This document shows positions 4,835 to 16,349 of a stretch of 64,000 bases of DNA, in pieces; position 1 is the stretch's first letter; the number at the start of each line of letters is the position of its first letter. The translations under genes and the position numbers were made by a program. This DNA comes from Paragordius varius. Its lineage: Eukaryota > Animalia > Nematomorpha. The stretch is from positions 5,208,001 through 5,272,000 of the forward strand of contig OZ176053.1 of NCBI GenBank assembly GCA_964247055.1. Direction: 5' to 3'. The notes below the pieces were generated by a model. It worked only from the letters and a program-made list of their open reading frames with translations, was not told the origin of the DNA and ran no database searches.

Positions 4835-6389
4835 TTATATTTTAGAGCAAAGCAAAGGAGGTTTTGGTGCTCTTCTTTTGATAGATGGCGGCGTAATAAA
4901 TTCCATACTATCATTCCCATTTGGGGTGTAAAAATTATTGGTTTTGTCATGGTTCGTGATCTCTGGGGTTCGTGAAATGGATGTTGATGGTATAAAGTTG
5001 TTAGTTCCATACTTGGAAGTTGAAATATTCATAATACCGTTTTGATATACAGTGAGATTTTCGTTTATGTTTAGATTCTAATACAAAATAAATATACAAT
5101 TTTCGTTTATGTTTAGATTCTAATAGAAAATAAATATACAATGAAAAAGCGCTTTTTATACTTTTTATTTAGGGCAATAAAATAATATTTAAAGTTTTAC
5201 TCTTATATGATTGAATATTTCTGATGTATTGATATTCGTTTTGGTGTGAGCTGGGGTAACGCTTTGCGTAGAAAATAAACCATTCATCGTATTTTCATGC
5301 ACCGATAAAATTTTTGGTCCATCCTTTGATACAGCGTTTGATTTCCCCTCATTATGATGTATTTCATCGTTTATATTGTGGTAAGATTTGGAATTTATAA
5401 ATTTGTTATTTGAGTGGGATGATGTGTAAGGAAATGATTCATCATTATGTAAAGCCGAGTTTAATGTTGTTCCCTGGGCGGAATAGTTTGAAGGAATGAT
5501 GGGACGACCTCTGGCTAAAGTACTGGCTTGATCAGCGGGTCGTACGGTTAAAACCAAATCATACGCATTAGCGATCATCATATCAGTTACCTGGGTATTA
5601 AGACATAGATAATTTAAACAGGTGGTCCTTAACAAAAAGATTAAAAGGGCCGAATAATACATATTTTTTGTCGCAAGGGCAACGCACCATAAAATACTGA
5701 AATATATATATATTTATCCTCTAATGGAAACGGTAAAAATTCATGGCCATAAAAAATAACCGTGGTTTGCAATTAAAATTTAAAAAGAATTTTAAATCAA
5801 ACATCCAATCAAAATTTTGTGGGCAGACACTTAGTATTAATCAAAATACACTTCCTTTTTAAATCAATAATGTGTATAATATTCACCATGGGATATAACT
5901 TTTTAGTTTAAGCCTTTTTTAGTGGGTATTCAATATATTAAACCTGTAAATTCACACAACACAACAAAAATAACACCCAAATAAGTTTTGCGTATGCGTT
6001 ATCAAAAATGTTTTATACTTGATCCAACGTTTTCCCTGATAAATCGATGCCATTGACTTCGACAATTTCATCGCCCAGTGACAAAAGACCTGTCCCAGCG
6101 GCAATTCCACCCGGCACAAGTCTCGAAATAAAGATGGCAGGATATCGTTCAAGACCTTCTGAGCCTATTCTAACGCTTATACCTTGTCGTATGTAGAAGC
6201 CTAGGGGACGATCATCATAATACTGCGGAGTTGATTGAGCTACATATATATATATAAATATATATATAAATATTATTACAAAGTATGTGAAATCGGGGGT
6301 GTCAAATTTCCTTATAAATCTCACACCAAGCCTATGTTGTGACTGACATCTACATAGCAAAATGCGTCCGAAATGATAATTAGCAGGAT

Positions 6390-6426
<37 letters not shown>

Positions 6427-9400
6427 GCCATAATAAAAAAAATCAATTTATTATCATAATAATGATCAAATTTTATATACAATAGGCATATATATGTTGT
6501 CAATTCACATAAATTTTTACCAACTTGAAATACGGTAGCGTATGGGTAAAAATAACAAATGGTTTAAATTATACATTTTCATCCTACCTTACGACATTTA
6601 ATTTTATTTATGGACAAAATTTGTTTTATATACGCTACTGAATAACTAATTCGCCAACATAAATGTATATACTGTGATTTATATAATAACATGTAAATGT
6701 TAATTATATTTTACTTGCAAATTTTGGCTCAATACGAATCGATAGATTTAAAATAAACCCCAATTTAGTTGATTTGTCTTGTCTAAATTAAGCCCTTTGT
6801 ATAAACATAAAAACTACTCGATATTAATAAATTTTGTGTCAAAATTGAGTTTAACTTTACTTTCTTAATATTTGGATTGAATTTTTTTTATAAAAATATT
6901 ATATTTTGAAATTTTTATTAAAATATATTTAATTGTTTAATTATCTTAGCATACCTGCATAAATGATCCATAGGAGTTTAAGCAAAACAAAAATGACGAA
7001 TGCTTTTAAGTTTTTAGATACATTGATTTGTAAACAACTATTTTTTAATCAGGATATCCGAATTTCAGACTCTATAAAACATAGTTTAATAATATATTTT
7101 TGCAAAAAAACTTTGATAATCGTAGATTGAATACAAGCATAAACCAATGATAATATTTGTAATCCATGTATAAACAACAATAATTTCATTATTTAATCAA
7201 CATAACAAAAAGCATTTAATGCTTGATTTAAGCAATAATGCCAAATATATTCATCAATCATATAACCCATAAAATTTTTCAATTTCGTAAGCGATTAACC
7301 ATTTTACCAATTTGATCGGTGAGTTTGCTGAGTCAAAATTTATCTATGAAAACTAACGAGTTATACTGCAAACTCTTCGTAGTTTTCACTTTTATAAATG
7401 ATACAGAAAGTCATTTAATGACTTACATGCTTCCCAAGCAATTGTCTCTTTGACCCCCATTAATTTAGGAAATTTTTCGTCCAATAAAAGTTGGTCAATA
7501 TGGCGACCAGTCAAAAACTTATATTTAATTTAGCTAGTGTCATTTCAGTAGCTGGGATACCGACTTTAGTCAGCCTGTGGATAAATTCATAATTAAAAAA
7601 CATGGATAAAGAGGACCACTAAATGTGAATAGACTAGTAACTCCTCTTCATATAAATTGGGCTTAGCAAGAACCTTTTTGATTAATTTGAATAAGGATGA
7701 TTAATTTCTTTTACCTTAATAAATTCCGAATGTCAAATGGGTGTTTGACTGGTCTTCAAATCGACCAACTGTTATTAGATGAGGAATTCCTTAATTTGAT
7801 AGGGGTTAAAGAGAGGATTGCTTGGGAAGCATGTGTTATTTAATGATAACTTCCTCTATCATTACAAAAGTGCAAACTACAAGGACTTAGCATCAGATCT
7901 CATAAGTTGTTTTTACCAACTGGGCAAATTTAAAGTTATATTAAATCAATATATTTTAATTACAACTCCATTTACTATTTATATATGTCGCCCAAACTAG
8001 ACATAGTGAACCAGCTCATAAATTTCAATGAGCAAACTCACCGATCAGACTGGGAAGAGGATTCATCAAATCTTGCAAAAAATTGAATTGTACAGGAACA
8101 AAAATCTTAGTCGTATGATTGGTTAGTATCTTTGACCATGAAGATACAATCTACTATATTTATTTTTGTTTATATATGTATTACAAAACTTTTGTTGTTT
8201 CATACTTGTATTCAATCTACAATTCAAAGCTGTTTTGGTGAAATACTATAATTAAATATAAAATAGTCCGAAATCCGGATTACTCCTGATGAAAAAATAG
8301 CTGTTTATATATCAATGTATATAAACACCTTTCTAATAAGTGTAATTAAAAGAATTCGTAAATTATTTTAGATGACCGGTAATCTTCGAAAGTTTAATTA
8401 AATTATCTTCAATCTCATTGTGTAGTACCTCAAATACTGTGTGAATCATAATCAGTATCAGTTCAAATTCGTATTAAATATTTTATATGCACTAAAAATG
8501 CTAAAATAAAATCAACAGAAAATTAATAGTAACCATAAAATAGGTTTGATCCACCATATTACTTATATCGACAAATAAGGTTAAACTTGAATTTTGACAC
8601 AAAGATTATTAATTTTCATCGATTAGTTTTAAGTTGTTGGCTTAAATTAGTTAAAAATTTGCGGCATTTTAAATCTATCCATTTATATTTAACAAAAATT
8701 TGCAAATTATATTAATACATGTATATAATATGTTTCAACTTAATTTTTAATCATGTTTTATAAAAACAAAGTTAATCTTTTCCGATTGGCCCTATATAGA
8801 AAAAGTAGCAAAAAAATTCTAAGTTAATTATTTTATTTTGGTATGTAGGTCTTACAAGGGTAATGATAAGCTAGGTTAGACATCTGGAGCTAATTGTTGC
8901 AAACTGTGTTATATAAAAGTGTTAACGCCACTTTCATCATTTAAAAATAACCTAATATAATGACTTATGCGCAAAAAAGTTTGTCAATTAAATTATGCAA
9001 AAAATAAAATAACCCTGATTTAATCAACATTAAAAACTCTGATTAGCTAACAAATGTACATAATGAGATTAAACACATTAAATTATAATAGTATAATTTT
9101 AGAAAAATATTATTATGCTTAAAATTCCATACAATAAAAATTAATTAATTAAATTTCGTTCATAAATACCGCAAAAAATGTAGTTGTAACCTTGAAAATT
9201 TTTTATCAAACAAGATTCTCTATACCATAAAATGGCATTGTTATTCATTCAACTATGCAGTAATATGAATCAATTAAATTAACAAATTATCATTAATATT
9301 TAAAGAGATAACTCTAAAACAAAAAACGTATAAATTCCGTCATTCTTTGTCAGTGGGAAAATTTTTGGAAATTCGTAACCAACAACTTAAAACATCTTTA

Positions 9401-12400
9401 TAACTTTTTGTAAGGACAAATTTTATTTTTATTAACCTGTTGCAGGGGGTAAGCCATTAACGGGCAATGATGTGGATGAGTATTGATGATTTGAGGAATG
9501 GTTGGTGTTATAATTATCAAAATTGTTAGCACCAATGTTATCTTTAGCCGTCATGGTGATTAAAGAGTGTGGGCAAGGTAAAACAGGTCGCCTTGGTTTA
9601 ACTAATCGGACTCGCCGTAAAGTTTTAGGTACAGTGTCCACATCAATGATCGAGGAAACTGTCCTAAAATCAAGCGGTCGCCCTATCAAAGGTTTTGATG
9701 CCCTTGGGGTGTTGACATAATTTTGTGTTGCCGTTGGCTGATAATGTGTAGTCGAGGAGATGCTATTGTGTGCTGCATGACCATTCAATAATTTAATGGT
9801 GTGCGGATGGTTTGGCATATAATAATTTTGGGGTGGTACTATGGTGTTTTAAGGATATTTTTTAGAAATTTTGTGCCTTAAACAAAATTGATATTAAAAA
9901 TATTTTAAATACGTAAAAAATTCGACATATCTAAACAAAATGTATTGTTGACCGTTACTAAGCGGCATATCAGAGAATTGGAAGTATTTTGCCCATGAAT
10001 CTATTTTAAAAACTAAAAATTAACTGTATCTTTGCTTATATTTACAAAGTAATGTTTACTAAACATTAAAGCACTTATATATTACTTTTATCGTAAATTT
10101 TTTTAATTCCAAGTAACGGAAGTCAAATTTGTCTAAGATTTATTATAAGCTCAAGAAGTTTACCATCATGGTTCGTTGATTGTTGGCTCCATGTATTGTA
10201 CATGGGATCAAGAATGGGTGATGATTTTTGACGCCTATGCAAATCTCCATTGGATATTTGATAGGGGTAATGATTGATACCATTGTCAGGTGTATAATGA
10301 GAGGAATTCACAGGGTGACCAGTATTGAGAAGTAAATTAGTGTACAAACTTTCAGCCGCTATATTATAGTAATTGGGGACAACATTAAGAATGTATTGAC
10401 TCAATCGATTTCGTTTTTTGAGAGAATTTGGTTGGTTCCCATAACCCGTTATTTGGCCTGGATCTTCGTCTGTTAACACAAAATTAAAAAATTAGAAAAG
10501 TGTGTTGATTACATCAAAAGATTCAAAAATATTTTTATCAAAAGTTTTTTATGTTAATTTCTATTTTTGTATTTATAATCTACAAATTTTTAATACACTT
10601 AAAATTCCTTTCATATTTTGTAATTAGTTTTTTTTATATTTCTGTTTTAACCTAAAAAAAATATGTGATTTAAAAAAACAAAAGAAAAGATTATGCTATA
10701 TAGTAAAATAAACAAAATACAGGTAAGATAAAAGGATGAAAGTATGAAAGATACTAAGAAATAATATATATTTTATTTTATTAATATTAATTTTCTTAAT
10801 GTTAATGTATGAAAGACATGAATAGGTCAAATATTATCATATTTGCCCTTAATTACAAGCTTTCCATGTATACAACTTCGCTTTTTATCAGCATAAGAAA
10901 GTGTAAAAAGTTTTTATAATGTGAATATAAAAAATTTTTTTTTAATCAATTGATAATAACCATAATATTTCGATAAATTTTATGGCTATATGGCATCACT
11001 GACGTAAAAATAAATTTATTATATAAGCCAATATTAGGATTGGTGATAGGAGAATTGTCAATGTAAAGAATATTAATTAACACCGTATACTACGCAAAAT
11101 CAAGCGTATTTATTGTTAAACAAAGCTCTTATCTAATAAAGTTTCATACCTTTCTTTATCTAACAAAATGATGATTGTTATATTAAAACCAAAATCATTT
11201 TAAGATAATTGCTTCCAACCAGAGGTGCAAAAAATTAGACGGAAAATGTCTTGCGCCCTCAAAAAGACGACAGATACATAGATTAACCTTATAAGGCCAT
11301 GTATGGAAATAATAAAATTTAAAAATAAATTCTGAACTTTTAGGCATTTACCGAATAATTTTCGTCATATGAAATTATAGTATGGGACAAAGGTCGAAAT
11401 AAATATAGGAAAAACGTCTTTTATTAGATTGATTCCAAAGCGGTTCTCAAAATGGAGTTAATTCTGGATCTAAGCCTTATGCCGTGGCATATTCAAAAAT
11501 GTTAAAATAGAACCCGGTTTTGGGTATTTTTAAACCCTAGTTTAAACATTCCTATTGTATTTAAGCGTTAAGTCCATAAAGACCTTCATTTGCTATAAAT
11601 TGACAGTGATGATGGAAAAATTGGTAATGGGTGAAGGTCGGTTTATAAAATGTGTTAAATTAAACAGCATTCTAACTCAAAGTCACAGGTCATATCTTTA
11701 ACAGAAGAGTTGGGTTAGGAGTGTTTAAAATATTTGGAGAATCAAATGTTAACGATTTTTTACATTATAATTAGGTAGTATTTTTTATTTTTCTACTATT
11801 TTAACGGGCTTAAAATTTATCGGAAAAGTTTTATTAAAAATTATTATATATCCATTGTCTAACTTTATATTTATAAGTATTTCCCTACAAAGGTAATTTA
11901 TTCATAAAACAAATTGAACAATAACAATGTTCTTTGGGCTATATACAAGAGAAAGCGTGCCAAAATCAATTAATGAATAATCATAATTAAAACAAATAAA
12001 CCCCCAAAAACCAAACTGCAAATGCATAATAAAAACGAATTGATTAAAAAAATATTTTTGAAAGTCTAAAATATTGTGAGTTAAAAGTTCTTTTATAAAC
12101 TACAGTGTAAATATTATTTAAAATCTAATTCATTAATATTTTCTAAATTTAAAACTAACCATTGTATTATTTAATTTCATATATGATCAGGTTTTTGTTT
12201 ACTCTAATATAAACCAAATTAAATTAGTTAGTATCGAGACAAAGCAAGATATAACTGGTGATAACTAATTAAAACTATAATAACCAGTTTAAAAAGTATT
12301 AAATAAACATATTGGTATATTCAGGGTTCTTTATATTTTTATTAATGACCAAGGATATGATATTTTATTAATATATTGAGATGAAATAAAGAATCATCTG

Positions 12401-15400
12401 TTTTAGCTCTTTCAAAATGATTAAACATTATTCGAAGTTAACTAAATGGAAACATCAACGAATACAATATAAAACACACCGTTTCAGTAAAAATGAAACA
12501 TATAGCAAATTGCAAAAAATGCAAAACCAATATTTTTTTAAAAAATAAAAACTATTTTTACCTTGATTTTTTTCATAACCTATTGTTTTGGGTAAACTTA
12601 TAAATAGAAATGTATGTAAATTGGTAACACACTTTATTATGTAACAATTATAAAAAAATATCAACCATCAAAAAAATATTGTCATGTTCGTAACATATAC
12701 TTTGTTTGTTAGTTTTGCCTTTATAAATTTAATTTTTTTAGCTTATGATATATGATATGATATAATATACCCATTTTTTGGAGCAGTATCCGTAGTAGAC
12801 AAGCATTATTGGTAACGGTTGTTAGGGCCCGAGCAAAATTTTCATCATTGTTGATGGGGAGCAGATCTCCATGCAACGGATCCGTGTAACAAATCGTAAA
12901 AGGCATCTCATTCAAAACAAACGTTTCTTGGAGCAATTCTCGGAACCGGGCAAATTTGGTGCATTCCGATTTGTGGAGAGCGAACCGGCGAAATTCCGCG
13001 TAAAACTGTGTTGTAGAATAAGCAAAGTTTAAAATGTGTAAAAGTTTTTTTGTGCACATATTTACATTATATTTGTCGCGGTCATTTTTACACTCCGATA
13101 TCTTATTAAGATAGACCCCTTGGTCCTCAAATCAGTTCTTTAATAACTATAAACTAATCATCTTATGCTGATAATTTTTGGCACTTTTCCGGTGTTTAAA
13201 GTATACCTTCCCACAATCATTAGTTTGTGGGTAGTTTAAGCGTTAATGTGACAAAAATAATACATAGGTTGGAAAAAAAACTAAATTATTATGTAGTTTT
13301 AATCAAAATAATTTCATTTTTTTAAAAATAATGCGAATCATGAACGATGTTTTCCCACAATCGGGTGAAATGGGAATAGGTGTCAATTGTATATTTCTAA
13401 CGAGTGGGAAATTGTACGCATATATTTTTACATATATTATCGAAAAGATTGGATAATATTATAATGTATGTAATATCTTGACAATTTTAACAATAAAAGA
13501 AAAAACCGAATTAATTAAATTAATCGGTCAATATTCATACTAATCTAAAAGATCTAAATAGTGTATGCTAGTAGTTAACTAAACAAAGAAAAATAAATAA
13601 ATAAAGAATCCACTTTAGGTTGTCGGGCCATCAAGTTTTCAGACAACATTATAATCACTTTACTTTATTTAACAAAAAATTATTGCAATATTTAATGTAA
13701 TGTTTGTTAAACTTTTTGATAATGTTTGACATACATTAGGCATTATAAATACAAACACCAAGTAAGAAAACCCCAAACAAAAAAAGATGACAAGGTCTCA
13801 AAAGTCAAAAACCATAAAACTATAATCGAGACACTATATACATACGATTGGATAGATAAGCATTTTCAAAAACATTCTAATTTAATCCCCTTCATCTTAT
13901 AATGATTAAATTTGATTAATTTAATATTTCTTACATTCTTCATAGATAGCTAAAAATAAATTATTATTAAATAGTAAAATATTATTATGCACTAAAAAAA
14001 TAAGGGTATAGGCTAAAAACCCTAAATTTACATTTGTTGCAAAATACGAACCATAAAAATTAGCAACGTTCACCTTTTCAAAAATAAAAAAAAAATACAT
14101 TCAAAAAGTATGAAAAATTTTAATTTATTTTTTATGACTATTACAAGTAGTATTCAAACTACACCAGCCATTTGGGATTTATAATGAATATGAAATTATA
14201 TGTTTTAAGAGAAACTTTAATATTCAAAACATAAAATCAAAAAAATTATTTTAAACAAAACTATCAAATTCATCCAAAATTTAGCTGCGTAAAATCCAAA
14301 ATAATTTTAATTTATTTATAAACACTATATAAATCAAAGGATTATATCGATTTTCATAGAAAAAAAATATCTATAAAATTAAACAATTCGAACTCCTGGA
14401 GTGCATGTTTCCTAAAACCGAGTTTCAATTTATAATTAGTTTTGAATTTAATAGATCTATGGATTTTAAAATTAATGAGTAAAGTTTATTTGATTTAAGA
14501 AAAATTAAAAAGGGCCAAATTGAGAGAGACAGGTTACCGATAAAAATGTTACCGCTGATAAGTGCGGTTATGGCTATCAAAAAAAACTATCAATTAAAAT
14601 CAAATTTTTGTACCATTTTTTTAATTTTTAATTAATTTAGACCCCACTTATATTCTTTTCTAATTACCAATTATTTAATAATATAGCTCTTTATTATATT
14701 AAGAATCAAATTAAATTGAGATAGATACAAAATTATAATTTATATGGAATTTAAATTTTAATTTAAGGGTTTCAGTTTAGATTAAGATAACAATAAATTA
14801 CAATATGAAATATTTTAACAACAATTTTGTATCTAAGGGAAATTATAATATCAACCAGCAAAAAATGATTAAATATTATTTCAAAAACAGGTTTCTCAAA
14901 ATATATAGCAATATACTTATTAATAAAAAACAATAAAAATATTTTATAAAGGGTTATCCTAAATATCCACCGGTATAGTTATTTATGGGTGTTGGCCTTT
15001 TGATAAGCTTTTTCCCTAACATCATATTTATCACATGAGTAATAAAATAATCTAGATTAAACAATTGATAAAAATTTAATTACGAACCAACCCTACCCCC
15101 CTTTGATTAGCATGTATAAATACTAAACCAAAAATCAATATGCCAACATGTTTTTAAATACTACATCCTGTTTCTATTTTTATAAATTTATAGAATATTG
15201 GATTTTAAACCTATCTTTTTATAAAATTTATATTATACATATCCTGTTAATATCCCAATAATATGTAACACGTTTAATGTATTTTTTTTACAAATTTTTT
15301 TTTACGATTTTCCATGATGTTAAAATAATATTTACACCCATTTTTCAAATTTTTATTTGAGAAAATATTTCTTTTGTGAAAATAATTAAAGTTTAAGTTA

Positions 15401-16349
15401 AACAGAATAGGTTAAAAAAATTAAATAATTCAATTTAATATAGAGTTAAGAGGATTGATTTTGGCTGATGGCGCAATGCTTTTAAATTTTTCCAAATAAA
15501 TATTTATCCAATGCATAAAAAACCAAGTTTTTTTAAAAAAATTATATTGATTTTAAAATTTGGACAAAATTAAAAATTATAAAAAGTTCCTAAATATGAA
15601 TGGTTAAAAGAAAGTTGGTAGTTATTAACATATCATTATACAAGTTCTGATAGAATTTTTATTCCTCACATTAAAAATGATAAATTATACTTTTATCGAT
15701 TGATATTTTTTTATTTTGATCTCTAATGAGTTGATTGCTAACTAAATAGGTATACATAAACGTTTCATATATAATACAAAAATCGCATGGAATAAAGAAA
15801 GAGCTTGAGAATTCAGTTATGCTAATTTAAGTGATTACATAAAACTACTATTTATGGAAAAAAATTTTATTATTTTTACATAACTCGCAAACATTAATAT
15901 ATGTAAAGCATATATGAAATATAGTATGTTGTAGGAATCATTTTTATGAATACAATTATGTATAATGTAAGCACCGCCTATATAATGCAAATTTAAATTT
16001 CTCTAAGCATCGATATAAAACAATGAAATATAATCTAATAAAGAAAAGTATGAGATATTTAGACTTATAACTTTCCATAAACGAGATAACTGAAGCATTA
16101 ATGATAGAAACTACAAATATAATTGATTAAAAGCATGTTTATGTTAAAAATTAAAATGATTTGATATTTGTATGACAAATAAATAATCTAATATGTAGTT
16201 TGAAATAAAAAACTATATCTTAAATATCAAACACAAAAAGTTACCAAAAAAATAAATTAAATATAACATGGAATATATACCTTAGATTTAACTTCAATAA
16301 TATCTGGATCAATGAATTTCCTACGTTTGGATTTGCGATAGCTCGACAT
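4835..16349 (-). CDS. par-6: Partitioning defective protein 6 (Par-6) homolog: PB1, semi-CRIB and PDZ domains; spliced gene
   Basis: Manually assembled exons, all GT-AG with consistent phases: 16349-16281 ([23 protein letters not shown]), 13005-12771 (FYAEFRRF...[24 protein letters not shown]1), 10469-10164, 9838-9437 ([17 protein letters not shown]...RRVRLVK, CRIB and PDZ betaA), 6239-6019 ([10 protein letters not shown]...[10 protein letters not shown]...GKTLDQ), then 5590 (VTDMMIAN...) either to the stop at 5189 (544 aa, ends RVKL) or to donor 5201 plus terminal exon 5077-4835 (621 aa). Motifs match Par-6 family consensus; the terminal exon choice is uncertain. Confidence 0.95.
5059..5142. 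repeat. 42-bp tandem duplication spanning a par-6 3' splice acceptor
   Basis: TTTCGTTTATGTTTAGATTCTAATA(C/G)AAAATAAATATACAAT twice (5059-5100 and 5101-5142), one mismatch. Confidence 0.95.
6394..6421. repeat. (TA)n microsatellite
   Basis: Directly visible. Confidence 0.95.
7295..8060. mobile_element. Foldback element with long imperfect inverted arms, par-6 intron 4
   Basis: CCAATTTGATCGGTGAGTTTGCTGA (7307) versus TGAGCAAACTCACCGATCAGACTGG (~8029-8053); ~7370-7520 pairs with ~7740-7890 (ACATGCTTCCCAAGCAAT... on both arms). Confidence 0.75.

Follow-up and report, generated by a model that had tools for sequence, protein, structure and literature searches.

An intron-split insertion in the PDZ carboxylate-binding loop of Par-6 in the hairworm Paragordius varius

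Background

Binding of Cdc42-GTP to the CRIB of Par-6 raises the affinity of the Par-6 PDZ domain about 13-fold (PMC8836106). The affinity switch has been placed in the L164-K165 dipeptide (Drosophila) and in the conformation that the beta1-beta2 loop adopts (PMC11996676; PMC7094393). The conformation of this loop decides between C-terminal and internal ligands, the switch has been linked to Lgl being released and Crumbs taking over (PMC11996676), and helix alphaA is the surface contacted by Cdc42 (PMC8836106). We analyzed a 64-kb stretch of the genome of the hairworm Paragordius varius (Nematomorpha), called the window below, whose positions are used throughout. On its minus strand (4835-16349) the window contains a Par-6 gene of seven exons in which the beta1-beta2, or carboxylate-binding, loop is enlarged by 59 residues. 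Our analysis suggests that this insert is probably a tolerated, disordered loop expansion of the hairworm lineage within a working Par-6.

The canonical CRIB-PDZ unit is represented by the structures from Drosophila (1RY4, 1RZX, 2LC6, 5I7Z) and of mouse/human Par-6B with Cdc42 (1NF3). The semi-CRIB, the RRVRLxK strand, the PLGF motif and the PDZ core of these proteins are also present in P. varius, with 65-72% identity over exon 5. The difference lies in the turn, which reads xK-HGSDK-PLGF in the canonical protein whereas P. varius has VK followed by the extra residues, and at two further sites, where YIRDG has become YIRQG and LAES has become IAAG.

Results and discussion

Position and composition of the insert

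The original prediction was of an insertion of about 59 residues in the carboxylate-binding loop, after the dipeptide, and the count agrees with it: 66 residues separate RRVRL from PLGF in P. varius, versus 7 in canonical Par-6. The insert begins directly after the Lys of the Leu/Lys dipeptide, which is V-K in P. varius (a pair also found in other Par-6), and it ends before PLGF. Residues 5-39 of the 1RY4 chain, ending RRVRLLKH, align to exon 4, and residue 40 onwards (GSDKPLGF) aligns to exon 5; because the two matches abut in the canonical protein, everything between the Lys codon (9597-9599) and YDD (6211-6219) is extra. YDD, the last three residues of the insert, stands where canonical Par-6 has GSD. 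The part of the insert on exon 4 contains 8 Asn, 7 Pro, 6 Ser and 5 Thr among its 53 residues. When the insert alone (exon 4 residues 70-133) was used in a word-based protein search, no match was obtained, neither a fragment with the junction nor a relative of the middle.

The insert was also predicted to be split by an intron, and this holds, with a phase-1 donor at 9437/9436, an acceptor at 6240 and 3197 nucleotides (nt) between them. The exon model was built from tblastn comparisons with the Par-6 of a second hairworm, Gordionus, and from RNA-like contigs of a public sequencing run (X2, described below). The features are as follows; a slash marks a splice site.

16281..16349, minus strand: exon 1; tblastn with Gordionus Par-6 residues 1-26 (77% identity), 3' boundary approximate
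12771..13005, minus strand: exon 2, PB1 domain; Pfam PB1, 60% identity to Gordionus Par-6 residues 23-102
10164..10469, minus strand: exon 3, where the expanded PB1-CRIB linker begins; X2 contig over 10189-10470, opening residues conserved with Gordionus
9437..9838, minus strand: exon 4 as a whole, made up of the next two features
9597..9838, minus strand: exon 4, first part, with linker, semi-CRIB and PDZ strand beta1; phmmer matches to PDB Par-6 1RY4, 2LC6 and 1NF3
9437..9596, minus strand: insert part A, 53 codons and 1 nt, followed by the phase-1 donor CAG/GTTAAT at 9437/9436; X2 contig gapless over 9839-9467, last 30 nt with no contig placed
6240..9436, minus strand: intron 4, inside the insert, 3197 nt, GT..AG, phase 1; X2 depth 0-3 versus 216-280 on exons
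6019..6239, minus strand: exon 5 as a whole, acceptor at 6240, made up of the next two features
6211..6239, minus strand: insert part B, (A)QSTPQYYDD; acceptor TGTAG/ at 6240, X2 contig to 6230 plus 20 unplaced letters
6019..6210, minus strand: remainder of exon 5, with the RPLGF carboxylate-binding motif and PDZ beta2 to alphaB; Pfam PDZ, PDB Par-6 matches, X2 joint to exon 6
5201..5590, minus strand: exon 6, end of the PDZ and low-complexity tail; spliced X2 contig, collinear with Gordionus
4835..5077, minus strand: exon 7, tail and stop codon; collinear with the Gordionus C-terminus KKRAPKPPMLCSKI, X2 contig runs on past 5201

All seven exons have GT..AG borders and their sum of 1866 nt gives 622 codons in frame. 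The PB1 domain on exon 2 (Pfam PF00564, E=1.3e-8, match span 12721-13059) and the PDZ domain on exon 5 (Pfam, E=1.2e-9, match span 6013-6240) are both recognized, and the semi-CRIB pattern I-x-x-P-x-DFR-x-VS-x-I-IDVD ... RRVRL stands directly before the PDZ. The CRIB and beta1 stretch of exon 4 comprises 33 residues at 9597-9695; in phmmer searches the semi-CRIB and beta1 match the PDB Par-6 CRIB-PDZ chains with E=4e-6 to 3e-5, and the CRIB is 83% identical to that of Gordionus. Exon 5 matches the PDB Par-6 PDZ with E about 4e-27, while other PDZ proteins reach 1e-14 or weaker. All the invariant CRIB and PDZ columns of a 47-sequence Par-6 alignment are kept, those of the CRIB and beta1 having been compared by eye. 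Judged by its sequence, the gene is the hairworm orthologue of Par-6, with PB1, semi-CRIB and PDZ intact, and it looks single-copy.

The linker between PB1 and CRIB (9840-10163 and 10164-10469) is also expanded, to about 150 residues rich in Asn, Gln, His, Tyr, Pro and Thr, compared with a few dozen in canonical and other Par-6, and only its first stretch is conserved with Gordionus.

Transcript evidence and the splice junction

Five public sequencing runs contain the locus, none of them recorded as RNA, and their contigs were placed on window positions 5100-10600. In runs X1 and X3 introns are covered as well as exons, so these two look like DNA. Run X2, in contrast, has a depth of 214-280 over exons but only 0-3 over introns. 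In one X2 contig positions 5587 and 6016 are joined, and the stretch left out has CT..AC ends, or GT..AG when read on the minus strand (exon 5 to exon 6); a loose contig end at 10470 reads CCAAAAAATG, the end of exon 2. We have treated X2 as RNA because of the exon-only depth, the GT..AG joint and the letters of exon 2 at the loose end.

A gene-model artefact would explain the extra codons as a retained intron or as micro-introns, so that the mature loop would be near-canonical; splicing at the phase-0 site RRVRL/GTTAAA to an alternative acceptor at 6222 would indeed give nearly the canonical loop length. The X2 contigs speak against this explanation on both sides of the intron. One contig is gapless from 9839 to 9467, passes through RRVRLVK and 130 nt into the insert at a depth of the class found on the other exons, and reads across three phase-0 GTs near RRVRLVK as well as a weak phase-1 GT at 9532. 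Another covers 6016-6230, followed by 20 letters that could not be placed in the masked TA repeat at 6231-6282, and it includes 6223-6230, which lies upstream of acceptor 6222. Since the contigs read through both places, there is no splice right after RLVK and acceptor 6222 is unused; splices to this acceptor after RRVRL (GTTAAA, 9602) and after PRRP (GTTTTA, 9584) were rejected on this ground. The original prediction had found no convincing earlier phase-1 donor that would remove the insert, and the X2 contigs bear it out, none of them being spliced directly after RLVK. A 25-nt GT..AG stretch at 9437-9461 could also be taken for a micro-intron, but its removal runs into a stop codon and it was rejected. 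In the RefSeq model of Gordionus, moreover, this site also carries an insert, and the intron phase agrees. We consider a gene-model artefact highly improbable and already largely refuted.

The ends of the intron follow from the few sites available. X2 depth is zero on 6283-6387, and 6231-6282 offers a sole AG, at 6241-6240; this puts the start of exon 5 at 6239, and a start further upstream was rejected. Exon 4 stays open as far as 9432, and from 9467 to that point GT occurs only twice, at 9461 (phase 0) and 9436 (phase 1). Donor 9461 was rejected, because its phase, combined with the one acceptor available, shifts the frame and leads to a stop. Thus 9437/6239 is the only frame-keeping GT-AG pair left, given that the other donor shifts the frame and other acceptors are absent. 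The contig break at 9467 is also present in the DNA-like run X3 and therefore more probably reflects a polymorphism than splicing.

The same locus was found at low depth in run X4, from organism B, a very close species or strain, with few differences per contig, and a contig over 9268-9612 keeps the insert region.

Rarity of the insert and comparison with Gordionus

The spacing between RRVRL and PLGF was compared in two sets of Par-6 proteins. The first set came from an exhaustive HMMER search with exon 5, with 150 matches listed, 83 of which contain both motifs; the second came from a word search for long Par-6 proteins (55 sequences). Among the matches listed in the first set the spacing is 7 residues in 77 of 83 proteins; two of its rows with larger spacing are artefacts of the regular expression, and the true exceptions have 6 or 9 residues, plus one protein with 28. 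The second set gave the 7-residue spacing in 51 of 55 and the same outlier, a hairworm protein encoded by LOC135925289 in Gordionus sp. m RMFG-2023. Besides P. varius, only Gordionus has an insert at this loop among the matches listed, so that similar insertions, whose frequency the original prediction left to such a comparison, are not common. Across the sequences surveyed, from vertebrates to nematodes, the beta1-beta2 turn keeps one length; the 7-residue spacing is near-invariant in Par-6, though not formally defining for it, and P. varius departs from it with 66.

The Gordionus protein (XP_065316605.1, XP_065316604.1) is collinear with all seven P. varius exons. It has its insert at the same loop site, bounded by the same stems, VKP-basic-basic-P and Y-[YF]-DDRPLGF, and it shares the C-terminus K[KR]RAPKPP[LM]LCSKI and the alphaA changes. 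The two hairworms differ in the size of the insert, which has 21 extra residues in Gordionus versus 59 in P. varius and an unrelated middle (KKDGVNKEFNEPDTHF), in the intron inside it (80 nt versus 3197 nt), and in the length of the whole protein, 922 residues versus about 621, the C-terminal tail of Gordionus being much longer. The CRIB exon of Gordionus ends NEP AG/GTTTAT, the next exon starts (D)THFYFDDRPLGF, and the phase-1 intron between them lies inside the insert, two codons from the position of the P. varius intron.

The loop carries no intron in Trichuris, the midge Clunio, an ostracod (an intronless gene) and the pika, the loci of which were read; in a tardigrade Par-6 the Gly codon of PLGF is interrupted by a phase-1 intron. 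Identity of the hairworm intron with that of the tardigrade was rejected, because in the tardigrade RPLG is encoded by the other exon. Insert and intron are thus both lineage-specific, and they coincide, because the loop is uninterrupted in the other animals and the tardigrade intron is elsewhere. The site, the stems and the phase-1 intron are common to both hairworms and the middle is not, which leads us to regard the insert, from these sequence comparisons, as an old feature of the lineage with drifting length.

Both hairworms also differ from other Par-6 at near-invariant PDZ sites (conserved in at least 90% of 47 Par-6). YIRDG is YIRQG in both, and GGLAESTG is GGIAAGTG in P. varius and GGIAAATG in Gordionus. 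The latter change is on helix alphaA, which Cdc42 touches. Together with the long low-complexity expansions in all linkers, the altered PDZ residues would fit a decaying or redundant paralogue, the conserved job being done by a canonical Par-6 elsewhere in the genome. We find this very hard to accept: the reading frame is open through all seven exons and these are expressed, Gordionus has the same derived features, which have thus been kept since the two lineages split, and no second hairworm Par-6 was found among the listed protein matches, a search of which the P. varius genome outside the window was not part.

Structure of the expanded loop

The original prediction called for an AlphaFold model of the CRIB-PDZ. 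The model was made for Gordionus only, as a proxy for the P. varius protein, with AlphaFold2 on residues 255-408 and the 47-sequence Par-6 alignment. The predicted local distance difference test (pLDDT) score is 80-90 in the PDZ core and below 50 in the insert, and RRVRLV is still a strand (beta1). Foldseek superposes this model on the Par-6 PDZ of 1RZX and 5I7Z with a template modeling score of 0.91 and a root-mean-square deviation of 1.5-1.6 A, the insert appearing as a gap. The core is thus kept and the insert is of low confidence. The part of the prediction that described an Asn/Ser/Pro-rich loop is matched by the composition of the P. varius insert; its disorder is probable, on the proxy evidence of the low-pLDDT Gordionus insert and of the Asn/Ser/Pro/Thr-rich composition.

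Among the weaker fold matches of the Gordionus model are PDZ chains of SNX27. The SNX27 PDZ has an insertion in its beta3-beta4 hairpin that binds VPS26. What the two share is a PDZ core able to accommodate additional residues in a loop, which may offer a further surface for interaction. The SNX27 insertion, however, is in another loop and is short and structured, whereas that of P. varius sits within the carboxylate-binding loop, is long and is predicted to be disordered.

Tolerated loop or altered Cdc42 control

We read the 59 extra residues as transcribed and translated within Par-6. If the insert is a tolerated expansion, their middle would form a disordered excursion from a PDZ core in which the switch lysine and the PLGF loop stay in place. 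Binding of Cdc42 by the CRIB and beta1 and of ligands by the PDZ groove would be expected to persist, and the coupling of the two would be weakened at most. As to origin, we can only suggest that the insert grew around a gained intron as splice sites drifted into AT-rich intron sequence, which would explain both the Asn/Ser/Thr-rich middle and the difference in length; the weak phase-1 GT at 9532 would yield an insert of about the Gordionus length.

An alternative, raised in the original prediction, is that the long loop uncouples or alters the Cdc42 control of the PDZ pocket, which we consider unlikely. The start of the insert lies one residue beyond the switch lysine, in the region where the literature puts the affinity switch, L164-K165 and the beta1-beta2 loop (PMC11996676, PMC7094393), and the near-invariant spacing elsewhere implies a constraint that hairworms have escaped. 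Both hairworms retain the stems VKP++P and Y[YF]DDR, and in both of them the near-invariant alphaA residues, on the contact surface of Cdc42 (PMC8836106), have changed from LAES to IAAG or IAAA. Conceivable routes, each of them speculative, are a looser link between the dipeptide and PLGF, a lid or pseudo-ligand over the groove, or docking through the basic-proline stem. There is a small chance that the loop and co-evolved changes in alphaA and in beta2 (YIRDG to YIRQG) uncouple the PDZ from Cdc42, or that the loop serves as a regulated lid or docking segment. However, the middle of the insert is conserved neither in sequence nor in length (59 versus 21 extra residues), as for a spacer, and all invariant CRIB and PDZ positions are kept. 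Because these residues and the V-K dipeptide are retained, a merely tolerated loop appears at least as likely as rewired Cdc42 control. The expanded PB1-CRIB linker and tail of the same gene would favour a genome-wide tendency over an adaptation specific to Par-6.

Several points weigh against a tolerated, disordered loop as we describe it. The junction 9437/6239, for which a check by RNA had been proposed, was seen in no read or contig of the public runs, 6231-6282 being masked; the RNA-like run carries sequence from both exons, and exon 5 is spliced to exon 6 in it. That X2 is RNA is itself inferred from its behaviour and not from its recorded type, and minor isoforms, for example from the weak GT at 9532, may exist alongside the contigs. 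The structural evidence comes from Gordionus and not from the protein of P. varius. The hairworm changes at the near-invariant YIRDG and GGLAESTG sites could mean altered regulation and an insert that is not neutral, and the conserved stems could reflect function rather than mere anchoring.

The 21 to 59 extra residues, carried since the two hairworm genera split, constitute a natural experiment on the short turn, at a spot where a lineage-specific intron and a loop insert both arose. If the switch still works in hairworms, the short turn is not required for the coupling of Cdc42 and PDZ; if it does not, hairworms polarise their cells with a differently regulated Par complex. Were the control rewired, hairworms would provide a naturally occurring separation-of-function variant of the CRIB-PDZ allosteric switch.

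Other features of the gene

The P. varius protein ends in CSKI, as does that of Gordionus, which fits S-x-I, and the insect Par-6 matches end in DIVTL. The hairworm C-termini (window 4838-4849, and Gordionus) have a basic-proline patch followed by LCSKI; they fit a candidate class-I PDZ-binding motif, [ST]-x-hydrophobic at the C-terminus, and are also loosely like a polybasic CaaX box.

A 42-nt tandem duplication at 5056-5141 repeats the last acceptor together with the opening 21 nt of exon 7 (tattag/AATCTAAACATAAACGAAAAT), and the DNA-like runs show a joint there that steps back 42. The first acceptor copy (5119) would stop Par-6 after 13 codons, and the second (5077) gives the tail conserved with Gordionus. 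The aligner placed 20 letters of the X2 contig on the first copy, so that either acceptor may be in use.

Intron 4 contains an inverted repeat with arms of 94 nt each at 7425-7518 and 7741-7834, which are 81% complementary and 222 nt apart. Both arms carry short open reading frames with similar peptides, and the structure looks like a repeat or a transposon remnant. Also within this intron, positions 6572-6755 have a contig depth of about 10,000 in the DNA-like runs X1 and X3, with 300-800 around them and many loose ends, and belong to a high-copy repeat family of the genome.

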